Below, in pieces: positions 5,277 to 42,304 of a stretch of DNA of 64,000 bases. A model generated the notes under the pieces. The model was given only the letters and a program-made list of their open reading frames with translations, made no database searches and was not told the DNA's origin. Source of the DNA: Oculina patagonica (Eukaryota); contig NC_135759.1 in assembly GCF_052425735.1 (NCBI RefSeq), positions 35,154,001-35,218,000 on the forward strand, read 5' to 3'. Position numbers and translations under genes: made by a program. Position 1 is the stretch's first letter. Every line of letters begins with the position of its first letter.

Positions 5277-8200
5277 ATGGCTCAATCAAACCCTCCGCTT
5301 GACTCGCAGTACACGAAAGGTCGATTTGCTAACAAGGTGTCCATTATAACTGGTGGATCATCGGGGATCGGACGAGCTACTGTTAAAAGATTTGTCAATG
5401 ATGGAGCTGCAGTAGCCGTGTTTGATATCAACGAACCGGACGGTAAACAACTGCAGGATGAACTTACAGCTTGTGGATACCATGGCAAGTTCTACAAAGT
5501 GGATGTGGCAGATAAAGAGCAGTGTGTACAAGGAGTTAAGAAAGTTGCTGAAGATCATGAGGGAAAAATACATTTTCTGGTGAACAACGCAGCCATCGGC
5601 GCGCCTTGTAAGGGTGAGTATGACCTGACCCGGGTTTTTAGCAAGTCAGTTAATTTACCGGTATTTTGAAATTCTCTTGTTCCTATTAAAACTCGACTAT
5701 TCGCACAACAAATCTAAGCCAATTTCAAAAGCATCGACTATTCATTCAAAGAGCTGGTTTATAGACTCTTTATACGGTTCCCGAATACGACGAATACGGA
5801 ATACACCGCAGCTATGAAACTCCAGTGGGTGTGCATGTGATTCATATTAAGTGTCACGTGAAGTCACGCAATGAGGAGACCGACGGATTTATCCTTTATA
5901 CATAATTTTCTGCGTTAATTCTGAAGACCAGCGGGAAATAATATAATGGAGAGACTGATAGATTTCTACGCTAGATTTGAAAGGTGGGCACCGGGATTGA
6001 AAACGACCTGACTGAAAAAAAAAATGGTTCTTTGAACGGGCCTCAAGGGAACCTAAATGGTCCCTTCCCTGTAGCCGCTACTAAATTTCCCCCAATTTTG
6101 TCCTTTTTAAGCGATGACGTCAGGAAATCGCTTATTGCCATCGCAAGACCGACCCGATCTTTTTGTCTGTTTCGGTCGAACAGAAATCAAGTTAAACTTA
6201 ATAACAAGAAATCGCCGCATAGAACACAAAAGCAAAATACTCCCGTGCAGTTAGAATGGAACACTACAATGTATAAACGAAAGAGACTAATTACATATGA
6301 TGGGATCTATTAGAATTAGTAGACAGAAATTTCTAACTCTTATAATAATAAGGGCCGCCGTGGGCAAGAGACCGTTTGACCTCTCTCGCAGCTTAAAAGC
6401 TAGCTCCCGCGTATCGTATGTCGTTTATCGGAAGTCACACACTACAATATAACGCAATCTACTGTTGTTCAATTGAGCAAATCTACGAAGAAAATGTATT
6501 ATTAACTTTGCATCCTTGACCTGCCTACTGTTAATTCTGTATTTATTTGAATTCCATCATATCCTAACTTAATGCTATTTAGACAATCACCAACATTGCT
6601 TCTTTGGTTTAAAAAATGTACACTGCAATTGGATAACAGTCTTTTTCCCGCCCTCAATCCCGTCATCGCTTCTGCATGCACTGCATGCCGTTTATTAAGC
6701 GATGACGTCAGGAAATCGCTTATTGCCATCGCAAGACCGACCCGATCTTTTTGTCTTTTTGTCTGTTTCGGTCGAACAGAAATCAAGTTTAACTTGATAA
6801 CAAGAAATCGCCGCATAGAACACAAAAGCAAAATACTCCCGTGCAGTTAGAATGGAACACTACAATGTATAAACGAAAGAGACTAATTACATATGATGGG
6901 ATCTATTAGAATTAGTAGACAGAAATTTCTAACATTTATAATTTTAAGGGCCGTCGTGAACAAGAGACCGTTTGACCTTTCTCGCAGCTTTTAAAGCTAG
7001 CTCCCGCGTATCGTATGTCGTTTATCGGAAGTCACACACTACAATATAACGCAATCTACTGTTGTTCAATTGAGCAAATCTACGAAGAAAATGTATTATT
7101 AACTTTGCATCCTTGGCCTGCCTACTGTTAATTCTGTATTTATTTGAATTCCATAATATCCTAACTATGCTATTTAGACAATCACGAACATTGCTTCTTA
7201 GGTTTAAAAAATGTACACTGCAATTGGATAACAGTCTTTATCCCGTCCTCAATTATGTTAGACCCTTTGTGAAACGTCATCGCTTCTGCATGCACTGCAT
7301 GCCGTTTTTTCCCTAATGAGACAGCCCGCTTGCGGGCTACGTACCCCATAGTTAGCTATTGCCTCTAATCCAACCTGGCCCTGGGTCCTTTAAAGATTTT
7401 TCTATATTCGGGAAGAGAAACGTCGAGACACACTTTGGAAAGACAAAATGCACGCACTTGAGAACAGGGCAAAGAAAGGAAAGGAGACAATGTTAAAAAT
7501 GGTGAAACGAAACTGGAAATATTTTTTCCAGTTACAGCTTTTTTTGCTGACGCGTTTTATAATATTCTCAGGTAGTGCATTTAAACATTTTAGATTTTAG
7601 ATTAACTGCAGACAGTACTGTTTCGGCCTTCTGGGCCTCATCAGTGCAGTGCTGATGCTAGGATGGAGGTTAAGCTGTATTGTATTGTATTGTATTGTAT
7701 TGTATTGTATTGTATTGTATTGTATTGTATTGTATTGTATTGTATTGTATTGTATTGTAAAAGGGTTTAAGTGAATTTTAGACGCGCCCCTTTTGACAGT
7801 ATTTGGAGATCTGAATAGAAGTAATAAGAGCTTACCATCTACTACCTTTTCACAGGTTTGGATTCTTCAAAGGCAGACTGGGATAGAGTTTTGGGAATAA
7901 ATCTCATTGGTTATTCCAACATGGTGCAAGCCTGTTACCCATTTATGACTAAAGGTAACTCGGTGGCCACGTGTTTGTATTTTTGTGTCAATATAGTGTT
8001 GTGGAAGAGTAATAGCCTGTGTAACGCGCAGATCGACGTTTTCCCTTTCGAGAACGAGACAACATCATATTGACAAGGAGAAACCTCATTTGCATTCACT
8101 TTCAACACACATTTACATAAGTTACTACTGTCTCGCGTCCTGAGCTTTACGCGGCACCTCTCATGCTCTCGGCAAGGAAACGACGGCTGTGCAGGCTAGA

Positions 8201-13173: not shown

Positions 13174-15442
13174 TTATTTTCCAACTCCCTCGGGACCTAA
13201 AGCCAAATATCCTCCATCGACTGCCAAGTCTGTGCCAGTTATAGCTGAAGCATCTTTGCTGCACAGAAAGGTGATGGCTGCTGCTACCTCCTCAGGCTCA
13301 CAGAAACGCCCGATCATCTGTCGCTTGGCAACATTTGGCTCATAGCTCTTCCGGCTTTCACCCAGAACTCTTTCTGCCTGCAAAATAATATGTCAAGATC
13401 ATTTTTTAAATGTCGGCCAGAAATACCAATAAGCACTTGTCTGCTTGTATTTGGCAACCTTAGCTTCCAAAATTGGGAATTCAATATTGATGGTATAAGT
13501 TGCCTATTTTGTGTTTCAGTCTCACCACAGAGCCCAAACTACTCCAAAATGTATGATCGCGAGTAGTAAGTTGGGATCTACGGGTCACTATATTTTAGTT
13601 TATTTGACAATTGAACTAACAAAATGCGTCCAGTTTAATGACTGACTGACAGACAGACTGTCTGACTGACCAACCAACTGACTGAATATGACTGAATGTC
13701 TGACTGACCAATTGCAGTGACTGACTGAATAACACACTGACTTTCGCTGACTAATCAAATGCAATTTTGCAGCAATTTTTTAGTAGGATTTGGATAAATT
13801 GAGGCCCTGCCAGGGTAAATTCCGACAAGCGACATGGCCCAAAAAGTAGTGACAGCAAATCAAATCAAATCGCGACAAACGACAACCCTTTTGGAAAAAT
13901 TTAAATTCCGACAATGACAAGTAATTTTCCTTCAATTTTACTAGCGACAGCAACGCGAAGTTTGATAAAACAATGACACGGCGCATTTTTATATTTAGAC
14001 AAGCAACACGGCAACCCCCCCCAGTAGCAAAAGCAGTAGCAAAAGGTCAATCAACCAACCTGATGAGTATGTTAAAATTTAAATCATTCTTGCACTTCTA
14101 GCCTGCATAGCAGTCGTTTCCTTTCCAAGAGTGCACGAGGTGCCCTGTAAAGCTTAAGACAAAGTCGAGCCAGAGCATGCCGTCTCCGTCTCGTGCCCAA
14201 GATTTCATGTGCCTCTTGCCTTGATCTCGAAAAGGAAACATGGGTCTGCTACACACACAGGGTGTATGCGCTTCTACAACACTGAGTTGACACAAAACAA
14301 CAAGCACATGGCCATGCAGTAAGGTACCTTTTGTCATAAATGGGTAACAGGCTTGCACCATGTTGGAATAACCAATGAGATTTATACCCAAAAGTCTATC
14401 CCAGTCTTTCTTTGAAGAATCCAGACCTGTGAATAGATAGAGGGTCATCTCTTATTACTTATATCATCTTCAAATACTGTCATTTATAAGGGCACGTCAC
14501 CAAAACCCTTTTTAAAAAAACACCAGCAAATAAACTGTAACTGAAAAAGAATTTCCTTTCCAGTTTTGTTTTACCCCCCCCTTTTATACATATTTGTTCT
14601 TCGTAATTTTTCTTTCTTCCTTTTAGATGTAATTCAGGGACGACGGAACATTTTTCCAAGTGGGGGGCTGACTAGTGACGGAAGAGGCCCCCCTTCTAAT
14701 TTCAACTCAAGTGTAGAAATCGGCTAGTCCCTCCGTCATTTTATTTTCTGCTGGTCTTTGGAAACTAAGTAAAGATAAAAATTTAACATGTTTTGACCTG
14801 TTTTTAAAATGTGTATAAACTCGGCTCCTCATTGCGTGACTTCACGTGACACTCAATATTCAGCTGGATTTTAAAAGTTGCAGTGTGAATCCAGTGTATT
14901 CTGTATCCGGGAACCTTACAAACGAGAGAAGAAGGAAAAGAATTCCCCTTCCTGTTAGCTCCTTGAATAAATTTTGTTGACTTTTATAGAAATTGGCCCA
15001 GTTTTGTTGGTTCAAGTTCAGTTCAATGGTTCAGTTTTAATAGTCCCGAACAGTATTAAACAATATCATGATAATATGATTACGTACGGACTCCGGTATT
15101 CTTACCCTTACAAGGCGCGCTAATGGCTGCGTTGTTCACCAGAAAATGTATTTTTCCCTCATGATCTTCAGCAACTTTCTTAACTCCTTGTACACACTGC
15201 TCTTTATCTGCCACATCCACTTTGTAGAACTTCACATGGTATCCAGAAGCTGTAAGTTCATCCTGAAGTTTTTTACCGTCTGGTTCGTTGATATCAAACA
15301 CGGCTACTGCAGCTCCATCATTGACAAATCTTTTAACAGTAGCTCGTCCGATCCCCGATGATCCACCAGTTATAATGGACACCTTGTTAGCAAATCGACC
15401 TTTCGTGTACTGTGAGTCAAGCGGAGGGTTTGATTGAGCCAT
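13174..15442 (-). pseudogene. SDR paralogue (SDR2) lacking the catalytic exon; exons 15442-15106, 14426-14328, 13377-13174
   Basis: Exons 1, 2 and 4 have the same lengths as in SDR1 (337, 99, 204 nt), open frames and intact splice sites. No counterpart of exon 3 (VNISS...YQASK...SPG) is visible between 13378 and 14327. Either a pseudogene or a non-catalytic isoform. Confidence 0.8.
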
Positions 15443-27664: not shown

Positions 27665-28164
27665 NNNNNNNNNNNNNNNNNNNNNNNNNNNNNNNNNNNN
27701 NNNNNNNNNNNNNNNNNNNNNNNNNNNNNNNNNNNNNNNNNNNNNNNNNNNNNNNNNNNNNNNNNNNNNNNNNNNNNNNNNNNNNNNNNNNNNNNNNNNN
27801 NNNNNNNNNNNNNNNNNNNNNNNNNNNNNNNNNNNNNNNNNNNNNNNNNNNNNNNNNNNNNNNNNNNNNNNNNNNNNNNNNNNNNNNNNNNNNNNNNNNN
27901 NNNNNNNNNNNNNNNNNNNNNNNNNNNNNNNNNNNNNNNNNNNNNNNNNNNNNNNNNNNNNNNNNNNNNNNNNNNNNNNNNNNNNNNNNNNNNNNNNNNN
28001 NNNNNNNNNNNNNNNNNNNNNNNNNNNNNNNNNNNNNNNNNNNNNNNNNNNNNNNNNNNNNNNNNNNNNNNNNNNNNNNNNNNNNNNNNNNNNNNNNNNN
28101 NNNNNNNNNNNNNNNNNNNNNNNNNNNNNNNNNNNNNNNNNNNNNNNNNNNNNNNNNNNNNNNN
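27665..28164. other. Scaffold gap (500 N)
   Basis: Run of exactly 500 N. Confidence 1.
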
Positions 28165-32133: not shown

Positions 32134-35100
32134 ATGGCTCAATCAAACCCTCCGCTTGACTCGCAGTACACGAAAGGTCGATTTGCTAACAAGGTGTCCA
32201 TTATAACTGGTGGATCATCGGGGATCGGACGAGCTACTGTTAAAAGATTTGTCAATGATGGAGCTGCAGTAGCCGTGTTTGATATCAACGAACCGGACGG
32301 TAAACAACTGCAGGATGAACTTACAGCTTGTGGATACCATGGCAAGTTCTACAAAGTGGATGTGGCAGATAAAGAGCAGTGTGTACAAGGAGTTAAGAAA
32401 GTTGCTGAAGATCATGAGGGAAAAATACATTTTCTGGTGAACAACGCAGCCATCGGCGCGCCTTGTAAGGGTGAGTATGACCTGACCCGGGTTTTTAGCA
32501 AGTCAGTTAATTTACCGGTATTTTGAAATTCTCTTGTTCCTATTAAAACTCGACTATTCGCACAACAAATCTAAGCCAATTTCAAAAGCATCGACTATTC
32601 ATTCAAAGAGCTGGTTTATAGACTCTTTATACGGTTCCCGAATACGACGAATACGGAATACACCGCAGCTATGAAACTCCAGTGGGTGTGCATGTGATTC
32701 ATATTAAGTGTCACGTGAAGTCACGCAATGAGGAGACCGACGGATTTATCCTTTATACATAATTTTCTGCGTTAATTCTGAAGACCAGCGGGAAATAATA
32801 TAATGGAGAGACTGATAGATTTCTACGCTAGATTTGAAAGGTGGGCACCGGGATTGAAAACGACCTGACTGAAAAAAAAAATGGTTCTTTGAACGGGCCT
32901 CAAGGGAACCTAAATGGTCCCTTCCCTGTAGCCGCTACTAAATTTCCCCCAATTTTGTCCTTTTTAAGCGATGACGTCAGGAAATCGCTTATTGCCATCG
33001 CAAGACCGACCCGATCTTTTTGTCTGTTTCGGTCGAACAGAAATCAAGTTTAACTTAATAACAAGAAATCGCCGCATAGAACACAAAAGCAAAATACTCC
33101 CGTGCAGTTAGAATGGAACACTACAATGTATAAACGAAAGAGACTAATTACATATGATGGGATCTATTAGAATTAGTAGACAGAAATTTCTAACTCTTAT
33201 AATAATAAGGGCCGCCGTGGGCAAGAGACCGTTTGACCTCTCTCGCAGCTTAAAAGCTAGCTCCCGCGTATCGTATGTCGTTTATCGGAAGTCACACACT
33301 ACAATATAACGCAATCTACTGTTGTTCAATTGAGCAAATCTACGAAGAAAATGTATTATTAACTTTGCATCCTTGACCTGCCTACTGTTAATTCTGTATT
33401 TATTTGAATTCCATCATATCCTAACTTAATGCTATTTAGACAATCACCAACATTGCTTCTTTGGTTTAAAAAATGTACACTGCAATTGGATAACAGTCTT
33501 TTTCCCGCCCTCAATCCCGTCATCGCTTCTGCATGCACTGCATGCCGTTTATTAAGCGATGACGTCAGGAAATCGCTTATTGCCATCGCAAGACCGACCC
33601 GATCTTTTTGTCTTTTTGTCTGTTTCGGTCGAACAGAAATCAAGTTTAACTTGATAACAAGAAATCGCCGCATAGAACACAAAAGCAAAATACTCCCGTG
33701 CAGTTAGAATGGAACACTACAATGTATAAACGAAAGAGACTAATTACATATGATGGGATCTATTAGAATTAGTAGACAGAAATTTCTAACATTTATAATT
33801 TTAAGGGCCGTCGTGAACAAGAGACCGTTTGACCTTTCTCGCAGCTTTTAAAAAAGCTAGCTCCCGCGTATCGTATGTCGTTTATCGGAAGTCACACACT
33901 ACAATATAACGCAATCTACTGTTGTTCAATTGAGCAAATCTACGAAGAAAATGTATTATTAACTTTGCATCCTTGGCCTGCCTACTGTTAATTCTGTATT
34001 TATTTGAATTCCATAATATCCTAACTATGCTATTTAGACAATCACGAACATTGCTTCTTAGGTTTAAAAAATGTACACTGCAATTGGATAACAGTCTTTA
34101 TCCCGTCCTCAATTATGTTAGACCCTTTGTGAAACGTCAGCGCTTCTGCATGCACTGCATGCCGTTTTTTCCCTAATGAGACAGCCCGCTTGCGGGCTAC
34201 GTACCCCATAGTTAGCTATTGCCTCTAATCCAACCTGGCCCTGGGTCCTTTAAAGATTTTTCTATATTCGGGAAGAGAAACGTCGAGACACACTTTGGAA
34301 AGACAAAATGCACGCACTTGAGAACAGGGCAAAGAAAGGAAAGGAGACAATGTTAAAAATGGTGAAACGAAACTGGAAATATTTTTTCCAGTTACAGCTT
34401 TTTTTGCTGACGCGTTTTATAATATTCTCAGGTAGTGCATTTAAACATTTTAGATTTTAGATTAACTGCAGACAGTACTGTTTCGGCCTTCTGGGCCTCA
34501 TCAGTGCAGTGCTGATGCTAGGATGGAGGTTAAGCTGTATTGTATTGTATTGTATTGTATTGTATTGTATTGTATTGTATTGTATTGTATTGTATTGTAT
34601 TGTATTGTAAAAGGGTTTAAGTGAATTTTAGACGCGCCCCTTTTGACAGTATTTGGAGATCTGAATAGAAGTAATAAGAGCTTACCATCTACTACCTTTT
34701 CACAGGTTTGGATTCTTCAAAGGCAGACTGGGATAGAGTTTTGGGAATAAATCTCATTGGTTATTCCAACATGGTGCAAGCCTGTTACCCATTTATGACT
34801 AAAGGTAACTCGGTGGCCACGTGTTTGTATTTTTGTGTCAATATAGTGTTGTGGAAGAGTAATAGCCTGTGTAACGCGCAGATCGACGTTTTCCCTTTCG
34901 AGAACGAGACAACATCATATTGACAAGGAGAAACCTCATTTGCATTCACTTTCAACACACATTTACATAAGTTACTACTGTCTCGCGTCCTGAGCTTTAC
35001 GCGGCACCTCTCATGCTCTCGGCAAGGAAACGACGGCTGTGCAGGCTAGAAGTTTCAAACTTGAACTTACTCAAGTTGGTTGATTGACCAATAAACGCTA

Positions 35101-40034: not shown

Positions 40035-42304
40035 TTATTTTCCAACTCCCTCGGGACCTAAAGCCAAATATCCTCCATCGACTGCCAAGTCTGTGCCAGT
40101 TATAGCTGAAGCATCTTTGCTGCACAGAAAGGTGATGGCTGCTGCTACCTCCTCAGGCTCACAGAAACGCCCGATCATCTGTCGCTTGGCAACATTTGGC
40201 TCATAGCTCTTCCGGCTTTCACCCAGAACTCTTTCTGCCTGCAAAATAATATGTCAAGATCATTTTTTAAATGTCGGCCAGAAATACCAATAAGCACTTG
40301 TCTGCTTGTATTTGGCAACCTTAGCTTCCAAAATTGGGAATTCAATATTGATGGTATAAGTTGCCTATTTTGTGTTTCAGTCTCACCACAGAGCCCAAAC
40401 TACTCCAAAATGTATGATCGCGAGTAGTAAGTTGGGATCTACGGGTCACTATATTTTAGTTTATTTGACAATTGAACTAACAAAATGCGTCCAGTTTAAT
40501 GACTGACTGACAGACAGACTGTCTGACTGACCAACCAACTGACTGAATATGACTGAATGTCTGACTGACCAATTGCAGTGACTGACTGAATAACACACTG
40601 ACTTTCGCTGACTAATCAAATGCAATTTTGCAGCAATTTTTTAGTAGGATTTGGATAAATTGAGGCCCTGCCAGGGTAAATTCCGACAAGCGACATGGCC
40701 CAAAAAGTAGTGACAGCAAATCAAATCAAATCGCGACAAACGACAACCCTTTTGGAAAAATTTAAATTCCGACAATGACAAGTAATTTTCCTTCAATTTT
40801 ACTAGCGACAGCAACGCGAAGTTTGATAAAACAATGACACGGCGCATTTTTATATTTAGACAAGCAACACGGCAACCCCCCCCCCAGTAGCAAAAGCAGT
40901 AGCAAAAGGTCAATCAACCAACCTGATGAGTATGTTAAAATTTAAATCATTCTTGCACTTCTAGCCTGCATAGCAGTCGTTTCCTTTCCAAGAGTGCACG
41001 AGGTGCCCTGTAAAGCTTAAGACAAAGTCGAGCCAGAGCATGCCGTCTCCGTCTCGTGCCCAAGATTTCATGTGCCTCTTGCCTTGATCTCGAAAAGGAA
41101 ACATGGGTCTGCTACACACACAGGGTGTATGCGCTTCTACAACACTGAGTTGACACAAAACAACAAGCACATGGCCATGCAGTAAGGTACCTTTTGTCAT
41201 AAATGGGTAACAGGCTTGCACCATGTTGGAATAACCAATGAGATTTATACCCAAAAGTCTATCCCAGTCTTTCTTTGAAGAATCCAGACCTGTGAATAGA
41301 TAGAGGGTCATCTCTTATTACTTATATCATCTTCAAATACTGTCATTTATAAGGGCACGTCACCAAAACCCTTTTTAAAAAAACACCAGCAAATAAACTG
41401 TAACTGAAAAAGAATTTCCTTTCCAGTTTTGTTTTACCCCCCCTTTTATACATATTTGTTCTTCGTAATTTTTCTTTCTTCCTTTTAGATGTAATTCAGG
41501 GACGACGGAACATTTTTCCAAGTGGGGGGCTGACTAGTGACGGAAGAGGCCCCCCTTCTAATTTCAACTCAAGTGTAGAAATCGGCTAGTCCCTCCGTCA
41601 TTTTATTTTCTGCTGGTCTTTGGAAACTAAGTAAAGATAAAAATTTAACATGTTTTGACCTGTTTTTAAAATGTGTATAAACTCGGCTCCTCATTGCGTG
41701 ACTTCACGTGACACTCAATATTCAGCTGGATTTTAAAAGTTGCAGTGTGAATCCAGTGTATTCTGTATCCGGGAACCTTACAAACGAGAGAAGAAGGAAA
41801 AGAATTCCCCTTCCTGTTAGCTCCTTGAATAAATTTTGTTGACTTTTATAGAAATTGGCCCAGTTTTGTTGGTTCAAGTTCAGTTCAATGGTTCAGTTTT
41901 AATAGTCCCGAACAGTATTAAACAATATCATGATAATATGATTACGTACGGACTCCGGTATTCTTACCCTTACAAGGCGCGCTAATGGCTGCGTTGTTCA
42001 CCAGAAAATGTATTTTTCCCTCATGATCTTCAGCAACTTTCTTAACTCCTTGTACACACTGCTCTTTATCTGCCACATCCACTTTGTAGAACTTCACATG
42101 GTATCCAGAAGCTGTAAGTTCATCCTGAAGTTTTTTACCGTCTGGTTCGTTGATATCAAACACGGCTACTGCAGCTCCATCATTGACAAATCTTTTAACA
42201 GTAGCTCGTCCGATCCCCGATGATCCACCAGTTATAATGGACACCTTGTTAGCAAATCGACCTTTCGTGTACTGTGAGTCAAGCGGAGGGTTTGATTGAG
42301 CCAT
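40035..42304 (-). pseudogene. SDR2 copy B lacking the catalytic exon; exons 42304-41968, 41289-41191, 40238-40035
   Basis: Duplicate of 13174-15442; exon 3 is also absent here. Confidence 0.8.

Follow-up and report, generated by a model that had tools for sequence, protein, structure and literature searches.

The closest described relatives of the element studied here are the non-long terminal repeat (non-LTR) retrozymes of the coral Acropora millepora, which consist of 220-240-bp hammerhead repeats, give rise to abundant circular RNA and undergo fast self-cleavage (Cervera and de la Pena, NAR 2020, PMC7229834). Invertebrate retrozyme hammerheads were reported to cleave well as monomers, and Penelope-like elements (PLEs) were proposed as the mobilisers of retrozymes (PMC7229834). 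Insertion with a bias towards (TA)n, 5' truncation and the formation of partial tandems are traits of PLEs (Craig et al. 2021, PMC8557442), and the bias towards microsatellite (TA)n was described in particular for the Naiad and Neptune PLEs (PMC8557442). Here, we describe a fragment of a coral retrozyme located in a 64,000-nucleotide (nt) stretch of the Oculina patagonica genome (NCBI RefSeq assembly GCF_052425735.1, contig NC_135759.1, positions 35,154,001 to 35,218,000 of the forward strand), which is called the window below and to which all coordinates refer unless another locus is named. The fragment is part of an insert of about 200 bp at 7559-7759, within intron 1 of the short-chain dehydrogenase gene SDR1, and its hammerhead is antisense to this gene. 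The insert is a composite, in which a piece of a 245-nt retrozyme lies inside a fragment of a long interspersed nuclear element (LINE). We consider it probable that this arrangement was produced by two nested retrotransposition events, first that of the LINE fragment and then that of the retrozyme, and that the local copy is an inert relic.

The hammerhead and its 245-nt family

The minus strand of 7605-7650 reads ACUGCA-CUGAUGA-GGCC-CAGAA-GGCC-GAAA-CAGUACUG-UC-UGCAGU. Stem I, as read from this sequence, is formed by 6 bp between ACUGCA (7650-7645) and UGCAGU (7610-7605) and is open. The CUGAUGA segment of the core, also taken directly from the sequence (7644-7638), is followed by stem II, in which GGCC (7637-7634) and GGCC (7628-7625) pair over 4 bp and enclose the 5-nt loop CAGAA. 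The GAAA segment of the core occupies 7624-7621, and the GUC triplet has its C17 at 7611, with the predicted cut between 7611 and 7610. The site thus has what defines a type I hammerhead, namely CUGAUGA, GAAA and a GUH triplet together with three helices of which helix I is open. Stem III is the palindrome ACAGUACUGU (7621-7612), all on the minus strand, which makes 3 bp and a GUAC loop in the monomer and 10 bp between two molecules in the dimer. The initial annotation of this DNA had described a complete type I core with a palindromic stem III capable of dimer formation. Every element of the core was found at the place it had given, and a double hammerhead is predicted for two copies. The hammerheads of newt satellite 2, of Schistosoma Sm-alpha and of avocado sunblotch viroid act as double hammerheads.

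A scan of the window with the hammerhead pattern produced matches only at 7605-7650 and at the duplicate of this site, 34471-34504. The comparison with Rfam that had been suggested as a check did not go in favor of the annotation: in the whole window no family was found at or above its gathering score, and the best match, obtained in E-value mode, was a sub-threshold alignment of the entire core to Hammerhead_HH9 (23.1 bits vs a gathering score of 52, E=0.0019). The Rfam models cover hammerhead variants with a short stem III poorly. A motif arisen by chance was also considered and was ruled out because the 42-nt core is found 65 times in the genome at no more than 3 mismatches, 47 of them exact, while the reversed control gave 0. 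Several of the genomic copies have mutations in the core, as expected if there is no selection on inserted copies.

Dozens of places in the 529-Mb assembly match 7604-7675, and the spacing between many of these is 244-245 bp. At one locus, L012, three complete 245-nt units follow one another head to tail; tandem arrays of 2-3 or more copies are found at many loci, and solo copies occur too. Metazoan non-LTR retrozymes are defined as tandem repeats of ~170-400 bp, each with a type I hammerhead, that have no coding capacity and a low GC content. The family consists of such tandem repeats; the L012 array has no open reading frame (ORF) of 100 or more amino acids, no tRNA or tRNA-like module is present in the 245-nt unit, and the unit, with a GC content of 45.7%, folds as a circle in which 67% of the residues are paired. 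The copy in the window is itself a 77-nt fragment of this unit. The element is a metazoan non-LTR retrozyme, of a kind already known in corals. It had been proposed that the ribozyme belonged to a small non-autonomous retroelement, of which this was a solo copy. The 245-nt unit, the tandem arrays and the 65 cores agree with this proposal, and the search for further copies that had been recommended with it returned a multi-copy family arranged in arrays rather than a single-copy sequence.

All copies begin at unit position 1, which is the 3' end of the RNA (...GUC^UGCAGUU). They stop at variable distances from it, after 53, 77, 87, 93, 97, 109, 147-165, 202 or 245 nt, or after n x 245 nt plus a partial unit. 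Copies that share a 3' end but differ in their 5' truncation are the mark of target-primed reverse transcription, and the pattern therefore points to this mechanism acting on hammerhead-sense RNA; the copies with several units fit a multimeric or circular template. The sites of insertion are strongly biased. TATATA or ATATAT lies within 15 nt of 13 of the 20 left junctions and 11 of the 20 right junctions, whereas the background, taken from random positions within these loci, is 1.8% (P ~1e-18 and 8e-15, respectively). Target-site duplications are visible, such as one of 12 nt at L008. Outside the window locus and its duplicate, retrozyme copies are bordered by (TA)n and never by (TGTAT)n.

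The 3' junctions of the family come in two forms. About half of them read ...TATATAACT|AACTGCAG and have an extra ACT or AACT (for example, those at L008, L013, L014, L017, L019, L022 and L025), and the rest read ...TATAT|AACTGCAG. The two forms mean that reverse transcription had two slightly different starting points beside the AUAUA tract of the element itself.

Two other observations concern the distribution of the family. Three copies of 245 + 97 nt on C4 (47550110-47550451, 47652996-47653337 and 47698373-47698714) share their flanks exactly; all three lie within a larger segmental repeat and do not represent separate insertions. The L012 locus includes a different type I hammerhead on the + strand, at 1380-1425 and 2373-2420 (C6, ~26296040 and 26297035), with CUGAUGAG, an 8-bp stem II, CGAAAC, the cleavage triplet GUA and an AU-rich stem I. 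This second hammerhead is located in a ~240-nt repeat, and the 245-nt array was inserted in the (TA)n of that repeat, so one retrozyme family is nested in another.

Structure and history of the insert

The two outer parts of the insert belong together. The first, 7559-7604 on the + strand, is the 5' part of a 5'-truncated fragment of a LINE 3' untranslated region (UTR), called X here, and ends ...TTAGATTA just before an internal TATATA site of X. A 45-mer from this part has 43 genomic copies at no more than 3 mismatches vs 0 in the control. All 19 other X copies that were examined read ...GATTA|TATATTTTTAC... at this point (GATTA|TATAT) and continue for 112 nt to a (TATTG)n repeat, beyond which the DNA is unique. 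(TATTG)n is the same pentamer repeat as (TGTAT)n, and it varies from 2 to ~30 units among these copies, which also differ in their 5' ends. The longer ones hold the C-terminus of ORF2 contiguous with X (...WNELPNEIR...RIRTVNF*), and a segment homologous to this ORF tail stands elsewhere directly after an RVT_1 domain (E=1.5e-18). Because of the pentamer tail, the variable 5' ends, the ORF2 C-terminus and the RVT_1 domain beside the homologous stretch, we identify X from its sequence as the 3'-terminal part of a pentamer-tailed LINE. The second outer part, (TGTAT)16.8 at 7676-7759 on the + strand, is then the microsatellite tail of X and not that of the ribozyme element.

Between the two parts of X, and in place of its 112 internal nt, lies the retrozyme fragment (7604-7680, minus strand). 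It comprises unit positions 1-77, that is, the 3' end in the RNA sense, it is antisense to X, and over its 77 nt it is 100% identical to the unit L012:1747-1991. The ribozyme piece is not a full unit but a 5'-truncated fragment, 77 of 245 nt. Its canonical 3' terminus abuts X exactly at the TATATA of X, the preferred target of the family, and its truncated 5' end, ...GCTGTAT, overlaps the pentamer tail by 5 nt of microhomology, the first pentamer unit (7676-7680) being common to both. The junction between X and the retrozyme exists in the genome only at the 7559-7680 insert and at 34419-34535.

The paralogous intron of the convergent gene SDR2 shows the site before insertion. It reads ...GGTGTTTTTTT|AAAAAGGG (...TTTTTTT|AAAAAGGG) at 14500-14527 on the minus strand, and a second copy of this empty site is found at 41363-41390. 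At the same place, SDR1 has ...GCGTTTT, then 7559-7759, then AAAGGG, which makes it ~200 bp longer than the SDR2 intron. The absence of 7559-7759 from the SDR2 intron bears out the view that an insert antisense in the SDR intron arrived after the SDR duplication. The initial annotation had gone on to interpret these ~200 bp as a single non-autonomous element, consisting of the hammerhead and a (TGTAT)n end of its own, that was inserted whole at the TTTT/AAAA site. That the entire ~200 bp are missing from the SDR2 intron is what such an insertion would produce. This interpretation does not hold against the composition of the insert: all 19 X copies examined have both the 45-nt left part and the pentamer tail, which marks these as LINE sequence; the borders of retrozyme copies are (TA)n; and the hammerhead is combined with such a tail only at this locus and its duplicate. 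We regard a single element as extremely unlikely. The TTTT/AAAA site is retained as the target of the LINE fragment, since the outer parts belong to X, and is discarded as the target of the retrozyme, whose target was the TATATA inside the LINE sequence.

The history that we favor would begin after the duplication of SDR1 and SDR2, when a severely 5'-truncated LINE copy, with only ~160 nt of the 3' UTR and the (TGTAT)n tail, would have entered the TTTT/AAAA site of SDR1 intron 1 in the sense orientation. Later, and recently, a copy of the 245-nt retrozyme would have been reverse-transcribed into the TATATA site within the LINE fragment, on the opposite strand. Priming would have taken place at the fixed 3' end of the retrozyme, which lies a few nt beyond the cut site, and the reverse transcriptase would have stopped after 77 nt. 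The end of the cDNA, ...GCTGTAT, could then have joined the (TGTAT)n tail through microhomology, with the loss of 112 nt from the LINE. For L1, target deletions that accompany retrotransposition and are joined by microhomology are known.

The same junctions could instead have been made in one event. A LINE reverse transcriptase (RT) that started on the (TGTAT)n tail would have switched to retrozyme RNA at TGTAT and back again at TA, and the chimeric retrocopy would have been integrated at TTTT/AAAA. Both internal junctions have microhomology (5 nt of TGTAT and 1-2 nt of TA), the two parts of X are collinear and in the same orientation, and retrozyme RNA appears to be abundant (contigs described below; PMC7229834). 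This pathway, though, needs antisense retrozyme RNA as template and two template switches, and the left junction falls at a TA site and exactly at unit position 1, the canonical terminus of the independent insertions, which is unexpected for a random switch. For these reasons, we consider a one-event chimera unlikely and prefer two nested insertions.

Activity of the local hammerhead and mobilization of the family

The hammerhead takes up the 3'-terminal 47 nt of the retrozyme RNA, and 5'-truncated copies longer than ~50 nt therefore keep a core-intact ribozyme. The intactness of the core at this locus is due to position and youth, not to selection. For the 46-nt monomer, the hammerhead fold was calculated at -11.1 kcal/mol vs a minimum free energy of -14.7 kcal/mol, which belongs to a competing hairpin, and it amounts to 0.06% of the ensemble. 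For two copies, a double hammerhead with the 10-bp intermolecular stem III is predicted at -38.2 kcal/mol vs 2 x -14.7 kcal/mol for separate monomers. In the native unit, stem I can probably be extended beyond an internal loop, according to a reading of the unit sequence by eye rather than a tool prediction. In the window copy, LINE sequence takes over directly 3' of UGCAGUU and replaces that strand of the native distal stem I, so that this stem is lost. The distal stem I usually supplies the tertiary contact between loop 1 and loop 2 on which hammerhead activity at cellular Mg depends. The local hammerhead is most likely an inert, dead-on-arrival fragment, as judged from these models; there is a small possibility that it pairs in trans with RNA of the family.

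A function at this locus can be imagined. The solo hammerhead would cleave minus-strand read-through transcripts from SDR2, either alone or in trans with retrozyme RNA through stem III, and would in this way limit antisense transcription over SDR1. The intact core, the predicted energy of the double hammerhead and the convergent arrangement of SDR1 and SDR2 are all compatible with such a role. It is nonetheless very unlikely: the monomer fold is a minor species, the native distal stem I has given way to LINE sequence, and the position of the ribozyme ensures that it is kept in all 5'-truncated copies, so its intactness is no sign of selection. An intact solo hammerhead in an animal genome therefore need not reflect selection, and the locus itself, interpreted as the remains of two nested insertions, is an ordinary transposon relic in an intron with little consequence.

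Assembled contigs were compared with a single-unit copy that has unique flanks (L003:1350-1900). Those of one run recorded as RNA-seq ("coral metagenome", X7) cover the unit (1502-1748) and not the flanks, and the same is true of those from runs X1 and X9, which are only guessed to be RNA. A joint at which the sequence goes back 244 nt is present in each of X7, X1 and X9, and one contig of 274 nt is a circular permutation of the unit. Metazoan non-LTR retrozymes are expressed as both linear and circular RNA monomers, and the back-joints would fit tandem or circular RNA of this family. The 245-nt unit is present in runs under at least 10 organism codes, and variants with 90-95% identity were found in runs of other species. 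A 1.2-kb RNA contig with a related hammerhead has a 30-nt loose end that is absent from this genome.

PLEs with hammerheads in their pseudo-LTRs were reportedly described by Cervera and de la Pena in 2014. The retrozyme family has the traits of PLE-type mobilization: a shared 3' end, variable 5' truncation, partial tandems and a bias towards (TA)n. The sole match outside the family to the pattern of core plus stem III is a 5'-truncated PLE at L055 (6850-8410, minus strand; C13, ~78.9 kb from the contig start). It includes an RT remnant (YRDD), followed by a GIY-YIG-like ORF of 251 amino acids, in which a Cys-rich linker and the motifs GIY/YVG and C..C..EK are recognizable; the hammerhead is in its 3' region, and the element then ends in ...AATTAT beside (TA)n. 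A Pfam search with its ORFs gave no matches, and the element was recognized by its motifs and by its Atlas neighbours, which carry GIY-YIG/HTH_animal. The family of this PLE gave 57 first-look candidate matches (40 scored, 42 matches reported), and its targets are (TA)n, (TGTA)n, (ATAC)n or similar. Stem III in the other PLE copies is ACAGAACUGU, and the agreement of the L055 copy with the retrozyme is a single-copy variant. These differences give no grounds for deriving the retrozyme hammerhead directly from this PLE. By their sequences, PLEs with fitting habits exist in this genome and are a candidate class of mobiliser only.

Taken with the literature, the insertion scars suggest a cycle for the family. 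Arrays would be transcribed, and the hammerhead would cut the transcripts to monomers, probably with the help of the palindromic stem III, by which two copies could pair as a double hammerhead; the resulting monomers would be circularised and copied back into (TA)n sites by Penelope-like machinery. The fixed 3' end, the n x 245 plus partial lengths and the (TA)n targets adjoining the AUAUA of the element might even be taken to suggest rolling reverse transcription of circular or multimeric RNA, primed by TA microhomology and carried out by a (TA)n-targeting Penelope-like enzyme, with the scattered solo hammerheads being cut in trans once their palindromic stem III has paired with the abundant retrozyme RNA. 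We put this forward as a doubtful but conceivable extension; if it is true, antisense transcripts of the host gain a cleavage site that depends on the retrozyme. The shared 3' end, the ladder of truncations and the (TA)n targets support the link proposed between animal retrozymes and Penelope-like machinery, and these insertion signatures could help in selecting a partner to be used in a retrotransposition assay.

Several points weigh against the account given here. No allele with the LINE fragment alone was seen, the two-step order is one that we infer, and the loss of 112 nt could be older than the arrival of the retrozyme. The local inactivity is deduced from fold energies and the loss of the distal stem I. 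The contigs give no information on strand, ends or circularity, and they could include DNA carried over from a 65-copy repeat. Finally, the PLE shares with the retrozyme hammerhead only the core and the design of stem III; stems I and II differ.

Genomic setting and comparison with known systems

SDR1 is encoded on the + strand. Its exon 1 extends from 5277 to ~5613 (adh_short, E=2e-21) and its exon 2 begins at 7856, which places intron 1 at ~5614-7855 and the right end of the insert 96 nt upstream of the acceptor. SDR2 is on the minus strand, convergent to SDR1. Upstream of the insert, the SDR1 intron has a ~560-bp tandem duplication with ~95% identity (6104-6658 vs 6691-7253, and also 32961-34113). 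The entire region is part of a 26.9-kb direct repeat with 98.8% identity, 1307-27664 vs 28165-54131, split exactly by a gap of 500 N at 27665-28164. Such an arrangement typically arises when two haplotype contigs are joined end to end, and the repeat is probably an unmerged haplotype overlap, that is, a false duplication. There may be only two SDR genes where the window shows four, and the counts of genes and repeats for the region are probably doubled and must be read with caution. The second copy of the composite insert, at 34419-34609 inside this repeat, is identical to the first except for the number of pentamers, (TGTAT)14.8 vs 16.8. It is probably the other haplotype and not an independent insertion; because both copies are identical apart from the pentamer number and lie within the repeat that abuts the gap, the composite insert was counted once.

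Compared with known systems, the family is of the same kind as the retrozymes of A. millepora: short AT-rich tandem repeats without an ORF, each with a type I hammerhead, in units of 245 nt here vs 220-240 bp there. In both, the host is a coral, arrays range from dimers to multimers and coexist with solo copies, and permuted or tandem joints occur in RNA libraries (here X7, with X1 and X9 only guessed to be RNA). Unlike the A. millepora units, the copy in the window comprises just 77 nt of a unit. The family here has a fixed 3' end, 5' truncations in a ladder of lengths and a strong (TA)n bias, and the terms "microsatellite" and "target site" occur 0 times in PMC7229834. As in newt satellite 2, Sm-alpha and avocado sunblotch viroid, stem III as formed in a monomer is not long enough to be stable, and its palindrome lets two ribozymes form a long helix III; unlike in those systems, the dependence on a dimer is here a prediction only. 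The outer part of the insert resembles LINEs with 5' truncation and microsatellite tails, as the 5' end of X likewise varies and its tail is a simple repeat. The 5' junction of the retrozyme, with its 5 nt of microhomology and 112-nt target loss, is similar to the target deletions of the L1 type, although the second insertion here is a ribozyme element that was probably driven by other, PLE-type machinery. With respect to PLEs, the retrozyme differs in that it is without RT or endonuclease and in that neither its stems I and II nor the remainder of its unit are detectably similar to the L055 PLE. It has in common with them the 5' truncation, the partial tandems, the preference for (TA)n and a type I hammerhead that is minimal and has a very short stem III.

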